A stretch of 64,000 bases of DNA. Origin: Zygnema circumcarinatum SAG 698-1b. Lineage: Eukaryota; Plantae; Zygnematophyceae. The DNA is taken from contig CM074814.1 of assembly GCA_037447605.1 (NCBI GenBank), positions 1,364,001-1,428,000 on the forward strand, written 5' to 3'. A program made the translations under genes and the position numbers. Shown piece after piece: positions 15,030-54,128 of the stretch (the first letter of the stretch is position 1; the number at the start of each line of letters is the position of its first letter). Below the pieces are notes generated by a model. That model ran no database searches. It was given only the letters and a program-made list of their open reading frames with translations, and was not told where the DNA came from.

Positions 15030-15180
15030 TCATGGCATGGCATGGCATGGCCACAACACAAACAACAACAACTAGGGCCACGCCATGCCAACTTTTCCAG
15101 CCTTTGGCTGGTTGGTTAGCTGGCTGAATGGCTGGTTGGTTGGCTGGTTGGTGGCTGGTTGGTTGGTTGATTGGTTGGTT
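15030..15180. repeat. Simple-repeat cluster: (ATGGC)n, (CAA)n and degenerate (GGTT/GGCT)n
   Basis: catggcatggcatggcatgg at about 15031-15050 and ggttggttagctggctgaatggctggttggttggc... at about 15105-15180, in the EDM2/DUF1853 divergent intergenic region. Confidence 0.8.
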
Positions 15181-15828
15181 GGGCTTGCAAGGTGGCGAGG
15201 ACGACAGCAGCACGAAGTCAGCGAGCGGCTGTGCGGGTGTGCTGCAACGGCTAAGTACTTGTGGCCGTACTGTACGGCGTAATGTACGGAGGCGGGCTTC
15301 TTGGAGCGGGCTGCGAGGCTAACGTCGGCCATGGCCATGGCGGGCTGGGGCTGGAGGAAGGGAGGGAGGAAGGAAGGAAGGAAGGCCTGTGGCTTGCAAC
15401 CGCTGGCTGGCGGAGTTGTGCAGCGACTGCAGCAACAGCTGCAGCACAAGTAATTGATACTGAATAGGCATGTTAATGACGATTGATACGACGAAAGGTC
15501 CTTGGTCTGTTCGTTGGATCTGAGCGGAGAGTCCCAAAAGTTATTTCATCTTGGAGGAAGGGTCCGTGCGAATGCTATCTTTGCGAGTGCAGGTCGACCT
15601 GCCAGCGGTGAACACAATTTCCTAATGGAAATGTAAGAAAGGAAGTGCAGCAAGTGCAGGGACAAATTGGTGGCTGTCTGGATGCCAAGCTACGCACTCG
15701 GCCATGGAGCATTTGCTGCCAAATGGATGCAGATGGTGCGTGCAGGAGGCTTATCGCGAAAAGATAGCATATGTCTATATTCTGGTGTTTGCTGTCACAG
15801 GCGAGCATGGTCGTTATCGTTAAGGTCC

Positions 15829-18800
15829 ATGAATATTCGTCGAAGACCAGCAGCTGAATCTAGTGAAGAAGCGATGGAGAAGCCTGCAGCCTCTAGCAGG
15901 CACTCAGACAAGGAACCGAAGCAATGGAGTCGTGACGAAGGAACTATTTTAAGCAGGTTCGATCACGTTGAGCATGGTGATGGTGGAGCAAGAAGCGTAA
16001 GTGGGTATGGAGACGAAGGCAGAGAGCGAGGCAGAGATAATCAACTTGAGCCCTTGCGAAGGCTGTCAGAAGATGGAAATCTTGGCAGTGTGGACCGAAG
16101 GCAAGCCACAAACAAGAAGGAAAGGAATCCCGGAGAAGAATTGATAGAAGAAGAATTGGGGCAATGGAGCGCAGCAGACGGCTGGAAGAAAATGTTTGCT
16201 TTTCCGAACAAGTAAGCAATATAAGCTCTTCCTTTTACTCCACTTCGGATGTGCCGAAAGTCATTCAGCTCGTTGCAGGGTTATTCCTGGTAGTACGCTA
16301 GAAGCAGTTGCATTGACATCTTTGTCGGGTCCTTATAAAAACATATCCCGTCGCTTTCATCAAGGGGATGTAGCTCACATGGTAGAGCGCTCGCTTAGCA
16401 TGCGAGAGGTACGGGGATCGATACCCCGCATCTCCATAATTTAAATGTTCATGACGTTTGTCGTTTTAGTCATTTCCCACGATGCTCATCATTGTGTTAG
16501 AGATGGAAAACGAAAGGCATCTTCTTCCGGCATGGAGATCACAAATAAAGTGATGAAAGGTATGCATCAATTCAGAGATGAAAAGATGGAAGAATGTTAT
16601 TCTCTTCCACGCATTTCTGAGTTTGTGGATTTTCCAAATGTACTGCACTTTGCAGCATAATGTCCACTCAGTCTGAACCGCTAGAAACGACCTCGTATGT
16701 ACTTTTTCTGAATCGTTTTCAAGTAAAGTAGACATTTCAATGTAAGTTTTGCCCTCAGTAAGTTGCCCAAGGTTGATCCAGTTGCTAGCGATAGATTACT
16801 TTTCCCTTTCTTCTCCAAAGAAAACGCGGGGGGAATTGCTACCATGTACACGCGTCCCTCCTGTCCCTAAAGAAAAAGAAGAAGCCTGATTCTTGCCGCA
16901 TTTGCAGCAAAATCCCATTGGAGTCCTTATCAGCACTCAGCGTGGCATTCAAAGATACGTACAAACAGGACTACTTTTGTCGTTTGCCCCACATTACCTC
17001 CTATTGAGCTCACTTCATATTGCGTTCTGCAGGCTAATACGCGATGTGGCCTTTGTGGTCTTTTGCCCGCAGCTGTTGTTGAGCTCCCATGAGGTGAGTG
17101 GTTGATGATCAGCTAAATTTCTCAGCTGTTGGTGTTCGCCTTTTCCATGTTGCATGCTCTCTGGGGGGGCTGCGACAGCCTTTTTTTTTGTCTGTGAGGT
17201 CGCCTATCTTGCTATGACAAACCTGCTGTTCGTTGGCAGGCAAGGACGCAAGGAATGCTGAAGACTGGTATTGAGCATGTTATTGATGAGAGTGGCTTCT
17301 ATCATGAGACGTCCAATCTAGTCTTGTTATCCCATTTTTTCAACTTTTCCCTTTTTGAAACGCGTTGTCTCCAGTTTTACCATTGGCCTGCTTCATGCCT
17401 TGAATGCAGAGTCGCTGAGGGATGAACAAGCTGAATTCACCCTCTTGTTAGCTTGCTTTCGTTTGTCCTTTCCATGAAACTGGGTTTCTCGTGCTGGGCA
17501 TTCTACACCTAAGTGCTGAAACTCTTCTTCTTTGTATTCTGAAAGCTGCCTACAGTAGACGATTCCTTCTTTCGCACTCGAACGACCCATGATCGCTCTG
17601 CGCTTTTGGAATGGTTAAAGTCACTTTGCCCTGATGCAGTAGAAGAGTGGTTTAGAAACCGAAGGCGAAGTGCTAGGCTTGGTAAGTTGCTCTTAAGAAT
17701 CCTTACTCTTTAACTGCACGGTATGGTTCATTTTTTTACGCAATTCTCACTTGCTTGCATCACTCCATGAACATCGTGCAAACCGTTGCAGTTGCCAGCC
17801 CAAGGAGTTACACTTTCATCATTCACTATGTTGACTTTGCGTTTGGAGAGCAGGGCTATATTCCTTAGATTTGAGAGGGCATTTCTGATTATAGCGCAGG
17901 AGGGGTTTTTCCAGGAGATCACTTTGCCGACTGTGTGGAATATGTGTTGCGTTTTGGCCCAAATGTTCGGCCACAGCAGCTGCAGGTTTCTGTCCAGGTG
18001 CACTTGGAAATGTCTCCTGCTGAAACCTCACAGCAGGAGGGCATGGGAGTTGGAAACCAAATGCCTCCATACTCTACGGGAAAAGGTGTTGCCACAAAGC
18101 TGCCTATTGTATGGGAAACTATGGGTACAAGGCTTGAGAATTGGGAAGCGAGCTGGGAGGATGTCTGGGCAGAAGAAACCCCTACAGAGGAATGCGGAAT
18201 AGATGCAAAGGTAGGAACAGACTTGGAGACCCAAGTGCCGAATTCAGTGACATTAAGGGACAGTTCTGAAGATTCTTCAGGTGTCTGTCAGGAACAGTTG
18301 ACTCAAATGGCGGCCTGCGAAGGAGATGATCATGTATCTTTAAGTATGGCAATGGAGGGGTCCACATGCGGTAGCAGCGAAGAGCCAGTATGTGAAGCAA
18401 TACTTGAGTCAGATATTTCAAAGTCATTGCAACAGTCTGTCAGCGAACACTTTAGGTCCGCACGAGGAGACATGAGCCTGACAAGTTTAAAAAAACTGAC
18501 CAGACGGGAGAAGAAAAGATTCTGGAAGGAAGTAAACAGTAAGAAGAAAATGACAACTGTTGGAGAATTTGATTTGCTCTTTCGCCTTCCCCCCGATGTT
18601 AGAAGCAACAGCATTGTGATGAGAACTCAAGATGGTCAGAATAGCAAGCAGTCTTCGGAAAGTCAGAGGGAGGTGACCTGCTCGGAGTTATCATTGTCTA
18701 TGAACAAGCCGCGTGTGAATGAGCCTCTCGGACCTGTTCATCATTGGGAACTAACTGTGAAGTTCTTACTTTATGTAGGACCGTGGGAGGTCTTAGGTCT

Positions 18801-20172
18801 GCCTAGCCCTCGTGCAAGTGCAAGAAAGTGTGGGTGCTTATTTCATTGCAGCTCTCAACGTTCTAAAGACTTTGGAGAGGATGATCGGTTTGCGAAGATG
18901 ACGAGGAATGAGGAAGAACGACTTTCTTCCAGTGAAGTGAACTCACATAACGGAACTTCGAATGAGACAAGCGAGGAGGAGATTCAACTTAGGCAAGAAG
19001 GTAGTATTTTTAGGCATTCAACGCATGGTTGGGCGAGAGATGAAGTTCTTGGATGGTACTTGGGACCCCATTTGGGAGAATCTCTTTTGGATAGAAAGGA
19101 ACGCCTTATGCGGCAGCTTAAGTTGGCAGAAACTCCTCTCGGAAGTAAGCATTTGAAGGGGCTTTATCCCCAGCTTGAAACAGAGTGCTGGAAAGACATC
19201 ATGGTGAGAGATGACTCGCTGAAAGATGCTAAAATTAAGGAATGCAAAAGTAAGGTCGCCCCTGAAATTATGCAGGATTTAGAGATGGTAGATCCGTACG
19301 AGGAAAGGGAAACTCTAGAGAGTAGCCCTGTAATTTCTGTAGCCCCCGCAGCATTTTTGCAAGGATTTTTATTCTACGAGTACCCACTTTGGGTGCAATT
19401 AAAAGGCCGCGGCTTTGGATTGGAAGGTCAGCCTCTGCAGGACCGATACAAGGAAAAAAATAACTTGCAGTCCAACTATGAAAAAGAGGAAATGGGTGCT
19501 GAATTGGAGGAACAGCACGGTATCTCGGATGCAAGCGGGATGGGTACTCCCTATCATGAAGAATCCCGCAAACTGCATAGAGACTCGTCAGGCGATAAAT
19601 CGGTTCATGTCAAAGTTGCGGGTTCATCTCTACAGATGAAACCACTTGTGAACCCTAATCACTGGTCTGGTTGGTGGACATGCGACCTCCATCGATTAGT
19701 GACGTTGCCAGAGAAAAGGGACCGACAGTGGTACATCATTCCAAAATTGGAGTGGTTGTCTCCCGTTGTGCTACTTGGGAGTGATGCAGAAGCTTTCAAG
19801 AAGGTGCTGAGTGCTGAGCAGCTGCTTGAAGTGACCTCCTCTGTGGCAGCAGAAGCTCGGAGCTTCCAAACCTTCCGAAAGCAGCGCTTCCTTCTCGCCG
19901 AACTTGAGTGGCTAGAGACGTATTCAGAAGTAGAAGGCTTTTTGGGGAGTGAAAAGAGACAATACGCATTGGGAGATAATGAGGCAGAGCCTCACAACAG
20001 CATTCATGGAGGGCAACGATGTGAGTCTGCTTCACTCCTTGCAGGGGCCTGGGTTGAGGTCAGTCGAGGGTTTGCTGTAGAAGCAACATGGCCAGATAGT
20101 AAGGATTATAGGCCACATGGGTTTGTGCCTGCATGGTCTCCTGCGCTCAGAAACTTGGACAGGAATGGGTAG
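15829..20172 (+). CDS. DUF1853-like protein (putative PD-(D/E)XK-like nuclease fold) with large low-complexity insertions
   Basis: Frame-consistent exons 15829-16211, 16656-16694, 17033-17093, about 17240-17267, 17556-17681, 17915-20172. Ordered motifs LIRDVAFVVFCPQLL, LEWLKSL, RLGDHFADCVEYVL, TVGEFDLLF, HHWELTVKFLLY, YLGPHLGESLLDRKERL..QLKL, FLQGFLFY, GWW, WYIIPKLEWLSP and RGFAV..WP match the bacterial DUF1853 pattern as I remember it. The start (15829 vs 16660) is uncertain. Confidence 0.7.
16364..16436 (+). tRNA. tRNA-Ala(AGC)
   Basis: 73-nt cloverleaf GGGGATGTAGCTCACATGGTAGAGCGCTCGCTTAGCATGCGAGAGGTACGGGGATCGATACCCCGCATCTCCA. Anticodon arm CTCGC-TTAGCAT-GCGAG; upstream TATAAAA at about -30 and CAA at -3. 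Confidence 0.95.
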
Positions 20173-20769: not shown

Positions 20770-20843
20770 GGCCTTTTAGCTCAGTTGGTTAGAGCGTGGT
20801 GCTAATAACGCCAAGGTCACAGGTTCGAGACCTGTATGGGCCA
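20770..20843 (+). tRNA. tRNA-Ile(AAT)
   Basis: 74-nt cloverleaf GGCCTTTTAGCTCAGTTGGTTAGAGCGTGGTGCTAATAACGCCAAGGTCACAGGTTCGAGACCTGTATGGGCCA. Confidence 0.95.
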
Positions 20844-22427
20844 TATCATGTTCTGCCCCAACGAAATTTTCGTCTGCGAGAAGCATTGGCCACACGCAGA
20901 GGGAGAGTGCCGTACCGTACGGTCAATAAAATGCCTCGATACATTGATACCTCGACTCTTCGATACGATACGATAGGGGAGCCATCGGGTCGACGAAAGT
21001 GCGGGGCTTTTTGACGACCTCGTCCAATTGACGCCAAACGGCGCTCGAGCAAATCCAGCCGTCCGTCCGTCCGTCCGTCCGATCTCAAAGCCGCGTTCCG
21101 TTCCAGCGCCCTCTCCGGTCCGTACGGCGCAGCACAGCGCAGCGCCCAGGCGGGCGACGGCGGCCAAGGGCGCGGTCACCGACGGTCACCGCGGTGTTTG
21201 CACATGCCGTACCGCGTGCCGTACAGTCGCCGTCAGTTGACACTCTCGCCAACAGCCCAACACCCGCCGTACACTTGATGCCATGCACTTGATGTTTGAA
21301 AGCACACATTATTGTGTGATCGGCGAGTCACTGCGTGCAGGATTTGTATTGGCGGGTTGACTAAAACGATTGGTATTGCACCGTTGTCTGTTGCGTCTTT
21401 GTGCAAAATTGAAGAGTAGTCCAAAGACATAGAAACCGCACTCAAAATGGAAGGGCATGGCAAAAATGGACTCTCTCATGGCTTTTGACATTGTCGCATA
21501 AGCGAAGAGCCACAGAAGCTTTGTTAGTTCGCCAACCCGTTTCTGGTAGCAATCCACTATTTCTCTCACTCGCGCGTGCTCTTTGTTCACAACCTCTAAC
21601 TTTTGCCTCCTAATATATCTTTCGAGATACTCACGGCCTTAATAGAATCCACACCGAGGACTACTGTGCACACCCACTATGTATGGTTTGCCATTGACAC
21701 GGTGTGAAGCATTTCGAACTATCCTCATCACCATTTGGGAAAACCATGGTGCCGCGTCTTGAATGTCCTCCCACAAAGGGAAACCCAAAAAACACTTCAT
21801 GAAAATGTTTGGTATGGTGATGCAGTAGATATTTTTTTATGCCATTTTCAACCATTAGATGATAGACTACCCTATCATTCCGAATCACTCTCAGTCGCAC
21901 AAGTGTTGTGTTCTTAAATTGAACATCACTATCAAATTGTGACGTGTCTATGTCATCGTTTCAATCGTGATCTACTGTGTCCAAGCCGTTCCATGCATGC
22001 TTGAACAGGTGCGCATCCAATCTCAAAGAATCCCAAATGCTCCTCCCCCCCGCCACCTGTTCCTTAGTAAGATTGCAACTTTTTCACTTTCGAGTCAAAT
22101 TGTCAGTCGCGACACGGTAGCCGCCACTCCGCATCTATCTATATCTTGCAGTCCCCCTCCTCCGCCTTCACTTCCCTCTCCTCTCTCCCTCCCTCCCTGC
22201 CCGTCAGGGTTGGGGGCGCGTCGCCGTTTACCTGCAATAAAAAGGTGCTTTTTAGCCCCCCTTGCCCCCATCCTCCGAGCGTACGGCCGACTTCGGCCGT
22301 ACGACATTGCCGTACGGCGGGGCACTGTGGTGCGCGGAGGATCATGGTGATCGTAGCAACCGTCCTCCGCCTGTACGCCGCCTTCGGGGCTGAACGAGGG
22401 CAAGGGCAGAAAAAAAATTGACAGATG

Positions 22428-22501
22428 TGGCCCATACAGGTCTCGAACCTGTGACCTTGGCGTTATTAGCACCACGCTCTAACCAACTGAGCTAAAAGGC
22501 C
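22428..22501 (-). tRNA. tRNA-Ile(AAT), identical to the copy at 20770
   Basis: Exact reverse complement of 20770-20843, with a T8 terminator about 10 nt downstream on the minus strand. Confidence 0.95.
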
Positions 22502-41605: not shown

Positions 41606-43490
41606 AAGGCCTTCACAGTTCGGACCAGTGGATCGGCAACCATTGGACAACCATTGGATGGCAATGGTTGGACGTCTACTGGTTGGCAACCAGTCGAATG
41701 GTTGTTTCGGTCCGCAACCACTGGTTGGCAACCAGTCGACTGGTTTGGAACCAGTGGATGCCACTGGTTGGCAACCAGTCGACTGGTTTGGAACCAGTGG
41801 ATGCCACTGGTTGGCAACCAGTCGAATGGTTGTTTCGATCCGGCGGCACTGGTTGGCAACCAGTCGAATGGTTATATCCATTAAATCAAATGGTTGGCAA
41901 CCATTAAATTGTCGGTGTACGGCTCTCCGTACAGTCGATATATGGGATTTGGTCAACGTGTACGGATATACGGTCAGGTGAAATAAATAGTACGCTTATT
42001 GTTTTGGCGGGTAGCACGGGATGCCACCGGTTGGCTGCGCCAATTGGGGCAGCCAATCTAGGACTACCACGTGGCAATTAGGTTACAGGCCTGCTGGAGG
42101 ATGGAGGCAGGAGGCAGGGACTGCAAGGAGGCAACGCAGAGGAGGACGAGCTCCCCGGTCTCACCGGGCGGCGGACATGGCCAGCCGAGCAGCCAGCAAG
42201 CAGAGGACGAGGGCCAGGGTGAGGGCGGGAGCCAGGGCGGGCGTCGAGGCGAGCGAGGAGCGGCGGACATGGAGGCAAATTATTGGAGCGGTGGGAGTGC
42301 GGCCGAATGAGGAGCTACGGCTCTCTTTAGGGCTTAGGCATAAATAGTGCTTAGTGCTTAGCTTAGGTTTAACCTTCTTCTGCTTTGCTGTGTGCAATCA
42401 GCCCTTGTGAAGGCTGGATAGAGGAGGTGGGAGCTTGGGTAGCTCAGGTGTGTTCTTTGGGATTAGAGGGTGTGTTTAGAGGATAGTGTGAGGTTGAGTT
42501 CGAGACACATTCCTTGTAAACATCCTTATTCTTATTAATGGAGTTTTAGACTTAGAGCTTTCTCCAAAGTTTTCTCAGTGTATGTTCTACTCCCTTGCAT
42601 GTTCCTCAGTCTGAAATGTCTACAGCGGCAAGTGAGGGGACATCTGCTGGGGGGTCTGACTCTAACATAAATCACTAGTTGTCAACGGTTGGCAACCCAC
42701 CAAAAAACACATACGACCCATTTTTGAGCCCCTACATCTCCCTACACGTTTGACTTACAGTAAACTATTAGTTTCCTCTTTTTGAAGTACTCACGGAACC
42801 CTAAGCCTAGCCTGAACCCTAAATCTGGACTCCTGCTCCTCCTCGCGATTCTGACTGCTCTCACAAAGCGCGCACTCATGCGCTCTACGGCGACAAAACA
42901 AAACAAAACAAAATAAATTCAGCAGAGCATGTCCATCCACCCAAGAGAAGAAAATGAGCACAAAAAACACACACATCGCAGTATTCGCATTTTCAGATGA
43001 TCACATACAGTTGAAAAAAATTCATATCAGAAATTTCAGAGTGTGCAGTTTTGCTGAAAATAAAAAGACTGCCAAAAGCAGTGGAAGTTTCAAAAACCCC
43101 TTCAGGGTTCAGGGTGGGAAAAAGAGCATAATTTCAGAAATTAAATGGTTGCCAACCATTTGATCACTGGTTCCGAACCAGTCGAATGGTTGTTTCAGTC
43201 CTGCGCCACTGGTTGGCAACCAGTCGAATGGTTGTTTCGGTCCGCAACCACTGGTTGGCAACCAGTCGACTGGTTTGGAACCAGTGGATGCCACTGGTTG
43301 GCAACCAGTCGAATGGTTGTTTCGATCCGGCGGCACTGGTTGGCAACCAGTCGAATGGTTGCCAACCAGTGGATGCCACTGGTTGGTTGGTTGGTTGGTT
43401 CCAAACCAGTCAAATGGTTGTTTCGGTCCGCAACCACTGGTTGCCAACCAGTCGACTGGTTTGTCTAATGGTCCGATCTGTGAAGGCCTT
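41606..43490. mobile_element. 1.9-kb non-autonomous element with inverted termini and subterminal arrays of quasi-palindromic repeats
   Basis: 22-bp TIR AAGGCCTTCACAG(T/A)TCGGACCA at 41606-41627 and 43469-43490 (1 mismatch). Repeat arrays (CACTGGTTGGCAACCAGTCGA units) at about 41630-41912 and 43139-43468. Inner array ends are also inverted. No TSD found. Confidence 0.65.
42000..42667 (+). mobile_element. Probable solo LTR nested in the 41606-43490 element
   Basis: 668 bp bounded by TGTT...AACA, with a GC-rich U3-like part, ATAAATA at about 42339 and a T-rich U5-like part. No PBS, PPT or clear TSD. Confidence 0.42.

Positions 43491-51360: not shown

Positions 51361-54128
<2,768 letters not shown>

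Follow-up and report, generated by a model that had tools for sequence, protein, structure and literature searches.

A DUF1853 gene of the alga Zygnema circumcarinatum: a putative PD-(D/E)XK nuclease gene probably inherited vertically within Streptophyta

How a gene of a chiefly bacterial protein family came to lie, interrupted by introns, in the genome of a streptophyte alga, and what its product might do, are the questions raised by a stretch of 64,000 nucleotides (nt) of Zygnema circumcarinatum SAG 698-1b (GenBank assembly GCA_037447605.1, contig CM074814.1, positions 1,364,001 to 1,428,000 of the forward strand), called the window throughout. A first interpretation made from the letters alone (the sequence-only reading) saw in this gene a horizontally acquired, domesticated nuclease of the family DUF1853, which it described as uncharacterised, chiefly bacterial, and part of the PD-(D/E)XK superfamily. 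Its description of the family agrees with the literature: DUF1853 has been reported as mostly bacterial and occasionally present in plants, algae, and Phytophthora, the eukaryotic proteins being much longer (Laganeckas et al. 2010, PMC3045609), and it is listed as of unknown function in a survey of PD-(D/E)XK proteins (Steczkiewicz et al., PMC3424549). A literature search found no later paper on DUF1853 after those two, and the window gene adds one more member to a family whose occurrence in plants and algae has been documented since 2010. Our best explanation, to which we assign a probability of about 0.75, is that the gene is the streptophyte-algal orthologue of a eukaryotic DUF1853 / COG3782 branch within PD-(D/E)XK and that it was inherited vertically.

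The gene lies on the + strand of the window with four predicted coding exons (Table 1), which encode about 945 amino acids (aa) when spliced by script. The 745-aa open reading frame (ORF; 17935–20172, +) from which the sequence-only reading started is present within exon 4, with every motif it had listed in its place. This ORF matches Pfam PF08907 (DUF1853) with an E-value of 8.8e-11 and 42.3 bits, above the curated gathering cut-off of 25, in an alignment that covers only ORF residues 568–637; a search of the ORF against NCBIfam gave no match. An exhaustive profile search yielded 282 representatives at E <= 0.001, and a bacterial profile of 316 columns was built from 35 bacterial-size homologues. 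Against this profile, the spliced protein aligns in six collinear pieces (aa 122–221, 394–482, 572–610, 645–684, 766–835, and 903–922) that fill 88% of the columns, separated by five inserts of ~172, 89, 34, 81, and 67 aa, which we judge compatible with the insertions of 50–190 aa proposed earlier. The bacterial DUF1853 consensus has the same ordered motifs as the window protein (RDxAW..SP.LL, RLG, GEFDFLF, HWExxVKF, GP..D.L..K, KGYLFY, GWW, W..LP.L.WLSP, SRGFVV..WP), and the domain is shared end to end, with the same predicted fold, with members from Marinobacterium, Gallionellaceae, Nitrotoga, and Chromatiales. Whereas these bacterial proteins have ~290–330 aa and no inserts and carry the Glu of motif I in 'YFE', the much longer window protein has disordered inserts, an N-terminal extension of ~120 aa, introns, and an Ala at this site with a Glu four residues on. 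On profile and motif evidence, the window gene is a member of DUF1853 / COG3782 and of the PD-(D/E)XK superfamily.

The upstream exons were located by tblastn of the protein from Amborella on the window, which gave three pieces that were read against the DNA and joined by script. Of the four small upstream exons that the sequence-only reading had supposed, the existence of upstream exons held, but three suffice. Introns 2 and 3 measure 452 and 233 nt, and all three introns are of the GT-AG type. The phases match at all three splice junctions, and 945 codons are joined without a stop. Joining exons 1 and 2 gives GWKKMFAFPNK-LIRDVAF, parallel to GWNFLKSLPNK-LVRDVGF in Amborella and resembling the W.FLK.LP.R-[LI][IV]RD motif of other orthologues. 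In-frame ATGs at 15682, 15727, and 15733, downstream of a stop at 15634, are possible alternative starts. Together with the PF08907 score and the six profile pieces, these introns bear out an intron-containing DUF1853 gene, which by its predicted structure is nuclear, carries spliceosomal introns, and is intact.

The distribution of the family speaks to the origin of the gene. The ORF had a single relative in a word search, the 611-aa protein LOC18440672 of Amborella trichopoda (E = 1.4e-38), which shows the whole motif series, and a second search with this protein gave 29 matches, all with PF08907, among which the named ones besides Amborella came from Cryptomeria, Ginkgo, Adiantum, Ceratopteris, Diphasiastrum, and Selaginella. 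No angiosperm except Amborella was among the 29 matches, in line with the earlier remark that this is not a usual angiosperm gene, and the pattern suggests that the other angiosperms lost the gene after Amborella had diverged. Cluster look-ups added Chara braunii, two Closterium species, Physcomitrium patens, the chlorarachniophyte Amorphochlora, the oomycetes Lagenidium and Aphanomyces, Chromera velia, and the dinoflagellate Alexandrium.

The streptophyte proteins examined (Amborella, conifer, fern, and lycophyte) align with the window protein from end to end and have their inserts in the same loops. With the orthologues of Amborella, Physcomitrium (LOC112283903), Cryptomeria (LOC131076467), Selaginella (SELMODRAFT_410197), and Chara (CBR_g34324), the window protein shares full-length orthology, the insert loops, a eukaryote-type motif I, a basic helix, and the C-terminal motif SRGF.VE.TWPDS..YRPHG. 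All of these proteins are uncharacterised, and their identity to the window protein is ~28–33% overall and 41–51% over the core. Insert length varies widely, the total protein length being 414 aa in Selaginella, ~945 aa in the window, and 1858 aa in Chara.

Sixty-one core sequences were placed in a careful maximum-likelihood tree (support given as ultrafast bootstrap / Shimodaira-Hasegawa-like approximate likelihood ratio test), which separates all eukaryote-like sequences from all sampled bacteria with 100/99, a split found in 100% of the bootstrap trees. Within the eukaryote-like sequences, the window protein, Chara, one transcript of the Marine Microbial Eukaryote Transcriptome Sequencing Project (MMETSP), and the land plants group with 100/97, and the land plants with 99/92. 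The window sequence is placed between Chara and the land plants, and since the gene tree thereby follows the species order, it indicates vertical descent in Streptophyta. The comparison thus shows, at the level of sequence, a gene that is orthologous with the land-plant genes and was inherited vertically within Streptophyta rather than acquired by this alga, so that any bacterial origin must be ancient: the family would have entered eukaryotes once, long ago, or would be ancient in them.

This result runs counter to the horizontal acquisition favoured by the sequence-only reading, in which a bacterial DUF1853 gene was transferred into the alga recently, or at least within its lineage, and then gained introns and inserts. 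The mostly bacterial family and its patchy eukaryotic distribution, with most angiosperms lacking the gene, would fit such a transfer. The same inserts and motif changes are, however, shared by Chara, Closterium, moss, lycophytes, ferns, gymnosperms, and Amborella, a broad vertical distribution that includes an angiosperm and is the very pattern that the sequence-only reading had named as speaking against transfer, and the core of the window protein is ~45% identical to streptophyte sequences but only ~29% to bacterial ones. Absence from related lineages and nesting among bacteria, the pattern expected of a recent transfer, was not found, and with the position of the window sequence in the tree and the single eukaryotic clade we consider this explanation scarcely credible.

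Next to the streptophytes stands a branch of mid-size eukaryotic proteins (350–515 aa). A word search with one member (P0049) returned only metagenome proteins. We regard the branch as eukaryotic because the contig of another member carries eukaryotic-type genes, and it probably comes from small algae. On this contig (L084:8001-9212, P0199), which is intron-poor and gene-dense, the DUF1853 protein has 403 aa and its neighbours are a Chromo/DNA methylase, a PP2C-kinase, and a JmjC gene.

Bacterial relatives were sought in contigs in two scans: one with plant-derived peptide patterns found none, and a second with a bacterial alignment found 481, the sampling being narrow and based on one peptide pattern. 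Two of the bacterial-size sequences bear on a possible donor, a copy in a metagenome-assembled genome (MAG) of Chlamydiales (L048:3001-3927, P0077) and a copy in another bacterial genome (L085:6001-6927, P0157, assembly GCA_001545115.1). They are the only sequences of bacterial size that combine TVGEFDFLF and HWEVSVKF with the eukaryote-type motif I (RLGDYFA..[VI]EFWL, with Ala at the bacterial Glu site and Glu four later). A single ancient transfer from a Chlamydiae-like bacterium to an early plastid-bearing eukaryote, followed by vertical inheritance in the green lineage and spread to the stramenopiles, alveolates, and rhizarians (SAR), would account for this likeness; it is compatible with our best explanation, to which it adds a donor. 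A careful tree with both sequences puts them on the eukaryotic side (86/97, 83% of bootstrap trees), approximately unbiased tests do not reject the grouping (p = 0.34 and 0.86), and V-type ATPase genes adjoin the MAG copy. Yet the grouping was named only after the data had been seen and its support is below the starred level, both branches are long (~1.1), and the overall identity of the L048 protein is higher to Proteobacteria (<=39%) than to streptophytes (33%). The binning of the MAG may be faulty, the narrow bacterial sampling applies here as well, and in the unrooted tree a transfer from eukaryotes to chlamydiae is equally possible. The Chlamydiales sequence may be the closest relative among bacteria; this is a lead only, and we rate a chlamydial donor as distinctly unlikely.

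The second question, that of function, starts from the three motifs of the putative active site. In motif I, on the first core helix, bacteria have a nearly invariant Glu in 'YFE', a site occupied by A198 in the window protein, while all streptophytes and most other eukaryotic members have a nearly invariant Glu (E202) four residues further on. Motif II is GEFD in bacteria, in the window protein (E411, D413), and in all streptophytes. Motif III reads HWExxVK in bacteria and HWELTVK in the window protein (E472, K476), with E...K in all streptophytes, and corresponds to the E-x-x-x-K variant described for DUF1853 (Laganeckas 2010, PMC3045609). No streptophyte or bacterial sequence in the comparison departs from E411/D413 and E472/K476, and the putative catalytic D, E, and K that were proposed earlier are indeed kept as D413, E472, and K476. 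With residues at all putative catalytic positions, that of motif I possibly supplied by E202, a metal-dependent nuclease is the most likely activity of the window protein as judged from its residues. It would act as a divalent-metal-dependent phosphodiesterase (endonuclease) whose active site may bring together three core elements, namely the first helix with E202, strand 2 with D413, and strand 3 with E472/K476.

Structure prediction is consistent with this assignment. An AlphaFold model of the 414-aa Selaginella orthologue, built with an alignment of 54 sequences, reached a predicted local distance difference test (pLDDT) score of 84.8 and a predicted template modelling (TM) score of 0.83 and has a core of helix-strand-strand-strand-helix-strand in which the motifs fall where they would be expected. 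The model of the exon 4 part of the window protein has a mean pLDDT of 63.4, with 86–96 in the conserved blocks and <50 in the inserts, and shows the same order of elements, again an alpha-beta-beta-beta-alpha-beta core. The Selaginella model superposes on a cluster of bacterial DUF1853 in the ESM Atlas with TM scores of 0.63/0.84 over 288 residues (root mean square deviation 2.8). In VIA, an aligner independent of Foldseek, its structural neighbours (Z 4.3–5.7) are largely PD-(D/E)XK nucleases, including the R2 endonuclease domain, Can2/Card1, NucS, BpuSI, SduA, the UPF0102 protein 3fov (Z 4.7), and TnsA, and further MGME1, HamA, Exo5, McrC, AddA, and Dna2; nearly all non-helical neighbours are PD-(D/E)XK proteins. 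The core of the window model has as neighbours 9wuf (Z 6.6), 3fov (Z 6.0, 88/102 residues), NucS (5.8), R2 (5.7), and Can2 (5.7). The case for a PD-(D/E)XK fold is carried by the consistency of the neighbour list and by its match with the literature, where HHsearch linked DUF1853 to 3fov as the closest profile match (PMC3045609). UPF0102 (YraN-like) is the closest solved minimal core to the window model, a family of ~100–120 aa that consists of the core only, has EXK where the window protein has EXXXK, and is likewise of unknown function. Sequence similarity between UPF0102 and DUF1853 was not detected in a PDB sequence search with the family profile, which gave only a chance match (E = 0.2).

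The only associative clue to a substrate comes from SAR lineages, which form the sister branch among the eukaryotic members. All 13 long SAR-type homologues tested (P0057, P0065, P0071, P0073, P0087, P0088, P0092, P0095, P0097, P0107, P0111, P0118, and P0133) carry a DNA_pol_A_exo1 domain (RNase D / WRN-type 3'-5' exonuclease) after DUF1853, and ten of them also carry tRNA_edit (YbaK/ProX-type deacylase). This fusion architecture was found in oomycetes, Chromera, dinoflagellates, and other marine eukaryotes, and a literature search on the combination of DUF1853, exonuclease, and tRNA_edit found no paper. Examples are the proteins of Lagenidium (N0F65_009728), Aphanomyces (Aste57867_17691), Chromera (Cvel_22497), and Alexandrium (A0A7S4QV86), which have an N-terminal DUF1853 domain of the same eukaryotic clade as the window protein, with the displaced motif I Glu. 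Unlike the window protein, they have the C-terminal exonuclease and usually the tRNA_edit domain, and their motif II is mostly GQxK instead of GEFD (Asp lost), motif III being mostly kept. By analogy, the fusion is a weak hint at a role in RNA or tRNA 3'-end metabolism and not in restriction or defence; PADLOC defence models matched none of the window, plant, or bacterial members. The loss of the motif II Asp from the fused DUF1853 domains makes this clue weaker.

Other features of the window protein may bear on targeting. A basic helix precedes motif II, with a streptophyte consensus KRKxKLLRK that is not found in the bacterial consensus, and might serve as a signal for nuclear localisation or as an arm that binds nucleic acid; the inserts, including this helix, may add targeting or substrate contacts. 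The N-termini are presequence-like in ferns, P0049, Amorphochlora, and the window protein when started at 15682, but not in Selaginella, conifers, or the window protein when started at 15829. Taking donor and substrate together, the eukaryotic DUF1853 clade might have come from a Chlamydiae-like donor near the time of plastid establishment and consist of nucleases for the quality control of RNA/tRNA 3' ends. An RNase D-type exonuclease and a YbaK-type deacylase would be their partners, joined to DUF1853 in oomycetes, chromerids, and dinoflagellates but presumably separate proteins in plants, with the gene kept in non-flowering plants and Amborella and lost in other angiosperms. We offer this joint scenario as speculation and think it improbable as a whole.

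Several points weigh against our best explanation, first of all at the level of the gene. The exon chain is predicted from homology and splice signals, the start codon and the number of exons upstream of 17033 are provisional, and the protein libraries searched contained no protein of this species, the top identity being ~30%. Five holders of sequencing runs were found, none of them recorded as RNA. An unexpressed or decaying copy would fit a gene model read from DNA alone with no matching protein of this species in the libraries, but a pseudogene would hardly preserve 945 uninterrupted codons in four exons with canonical splice sites and all family-invariant residues, and a 745-codon open frame is unlikely to arise by chance; we therefore consider a pseudogene very improbable.

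Further points concern fold and activity. The sequence-only reading had proposed modelling with AlphaFold and a Foldseek comparison: the modelling gave the core topology and, through VIA, the PD-(D/E)XK neighbours, but Foldseek found no match in the PDB at E <= 0.001, and the VIA Z-scores of the models all lie below 8, a range that is common by the tool's own standard. The motif I Glu is absent from its bacterial position in the window protein, the putative replacement sitting one helical turn later. Around the bacterial genes, first on two contigs and then at 80 clustered loci, no conserved partner was seen, only lineage-specific synteny and antisense shadow ORFs. The fused SAR proteins with GQxK may use DUF1853 as a binding module and say little about catalysis, and the papers found report no assay of any DUF1853 member.

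With several of these points in mind, the window protein could have kept the fold without being a nuclease, as a nucleic-acid- or protein-binding scaffold whose function lies in the large disordered inserts. The displaced motif I Glu would agree with this, as would the predicted disorder of more than half of exon 4, the conservation of the SAR branch despite its lost motif II acidic residues, and the lack of a member with shown activity in the papers found. The invariance of E411/D413 and E472/K476 in all streptophytes and bacteria compared argues for catalysis, however, and the displaced Glu, nearly invariant in eukaryotes, would occupy the same helix face, so that we consider a mere scaffold unlikely, though worth keeping in view, and retain the reading as a metal-dependent nuclease.

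As far as sequences can tell, DUF1853 is thus conserved from Proteobacteria to conifers with a putative nuclease site that is probably intact, and its interest stems mainly from the fusion clue, the displacement of motif I, and the phyletic pattern. The value of the window gene is that of an entry point: the streptophyte branch is genetically tractable in Physcomitrium, and the compact Selaginella protein (414 aa), with its confident model, is suited to biochemistry. The SAR fusion with RNase D-type and YbaK-type domains offers a first testable idea of a DUF1853 substrate, and the apparent loss in angiosperms except Amborella may explain why plant biology has neglected the gene.

Table 1. Coordinates of the DUF1853 gene, its motifs, and other features in the window (position 1 is the first letter of the window).
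Feature	Position	Strand	Remarks
Exon 1 (coding part)	15829–16211	+	from ATG 15829 to ...GWKKMFAFPN + AA of a Lys codon; donor AA/GTAAGC
Intron 1	16212–17032	+	821 nt, GT...AG; donor GTAAGC; contains the tRNA-Ala(AGC) gene
Exon 2	17033–17093	+	(K)LIRDVAFVVFCPQLLLSSHE, N-terminal DUF1853 motif; acceptor CAG/G, donor GAG/GTGAGT; tblastn with the Amborella orthologue
Exon 3	17546–17681	+	LPTVDDSFF...EWLKSLCPDAVEEWFRNRRRSARL + G; acceptor AAG/C, donor G/GTAAGT; tblastn with the Amborella orthologue
Exon 4	17915–20172	+	745-aa ORF, motif I helix (A198, E202), motifs II and III, C-terminal conserved blocks, stop codon
Motif IRDVAF	17037–17054	+	
Motif RLGDHF	17675–17925	+	straddles the exon 3/4 junction
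Basic helix KKLTRREKKRFWKEVNSKKK	18490–18549	+	directly before motif II; streptophyte alignment and helical hairpin in both models
Motif TVGEFD	18556–18573	+	motif II, GEFD (E411, D413); in exon 4
Motif HWELTVKF	18742–18765	+	motif III, HWELTVK (E472, K476); in exon 4
Motif LGPHLGESLLDRKERLMRQL	19060–19119	+	
Motif QGFLFY	19360–19377	+	
Motif GWW	19669–19677	+	
Motif WYIIPKLEWLSP	19729–19764	+	
Motif RGFAVEATW	20065–20091	+	
Short-period repeat	~15090–15210		upstream of the gene
tRNA-Ala(AGC)	16364–16436	+	
tRNA-Ile(AAT)	20770–20843	+	
tRNA-Ile(AAT)	22427–22501	-	
tRNA-Ala(GGC)-like	41690–41787	+	
tRNA-Ala(GGC)-like	43220–43317	+	
Extreme strand composition	52001–54000		2-kb bin

Several other features lie in or near the gene and elsewhere in the window. 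The tRNA-Ala(AGC) gene is nested in intron 1 on the gene's own strand, and of the two tRNA-Ile(AAT) genes, which are in opposite orientation, the first lies ~600 nt past the DUF1853 stop. The short-period repeat upstream of the gene gives ORF translations of GWLVGWLV... on the + strand and NQPTNQPANQP... on the - strand. Further downstream, the two tRNA-Ala(GGC)-like calls have 98 nt each, which is long for a tRNA, and lie 1.5 kb apart, and the 2-kb bin of extreme strand composition has a GC skew of -0.79 and an AT skew of -0.78.

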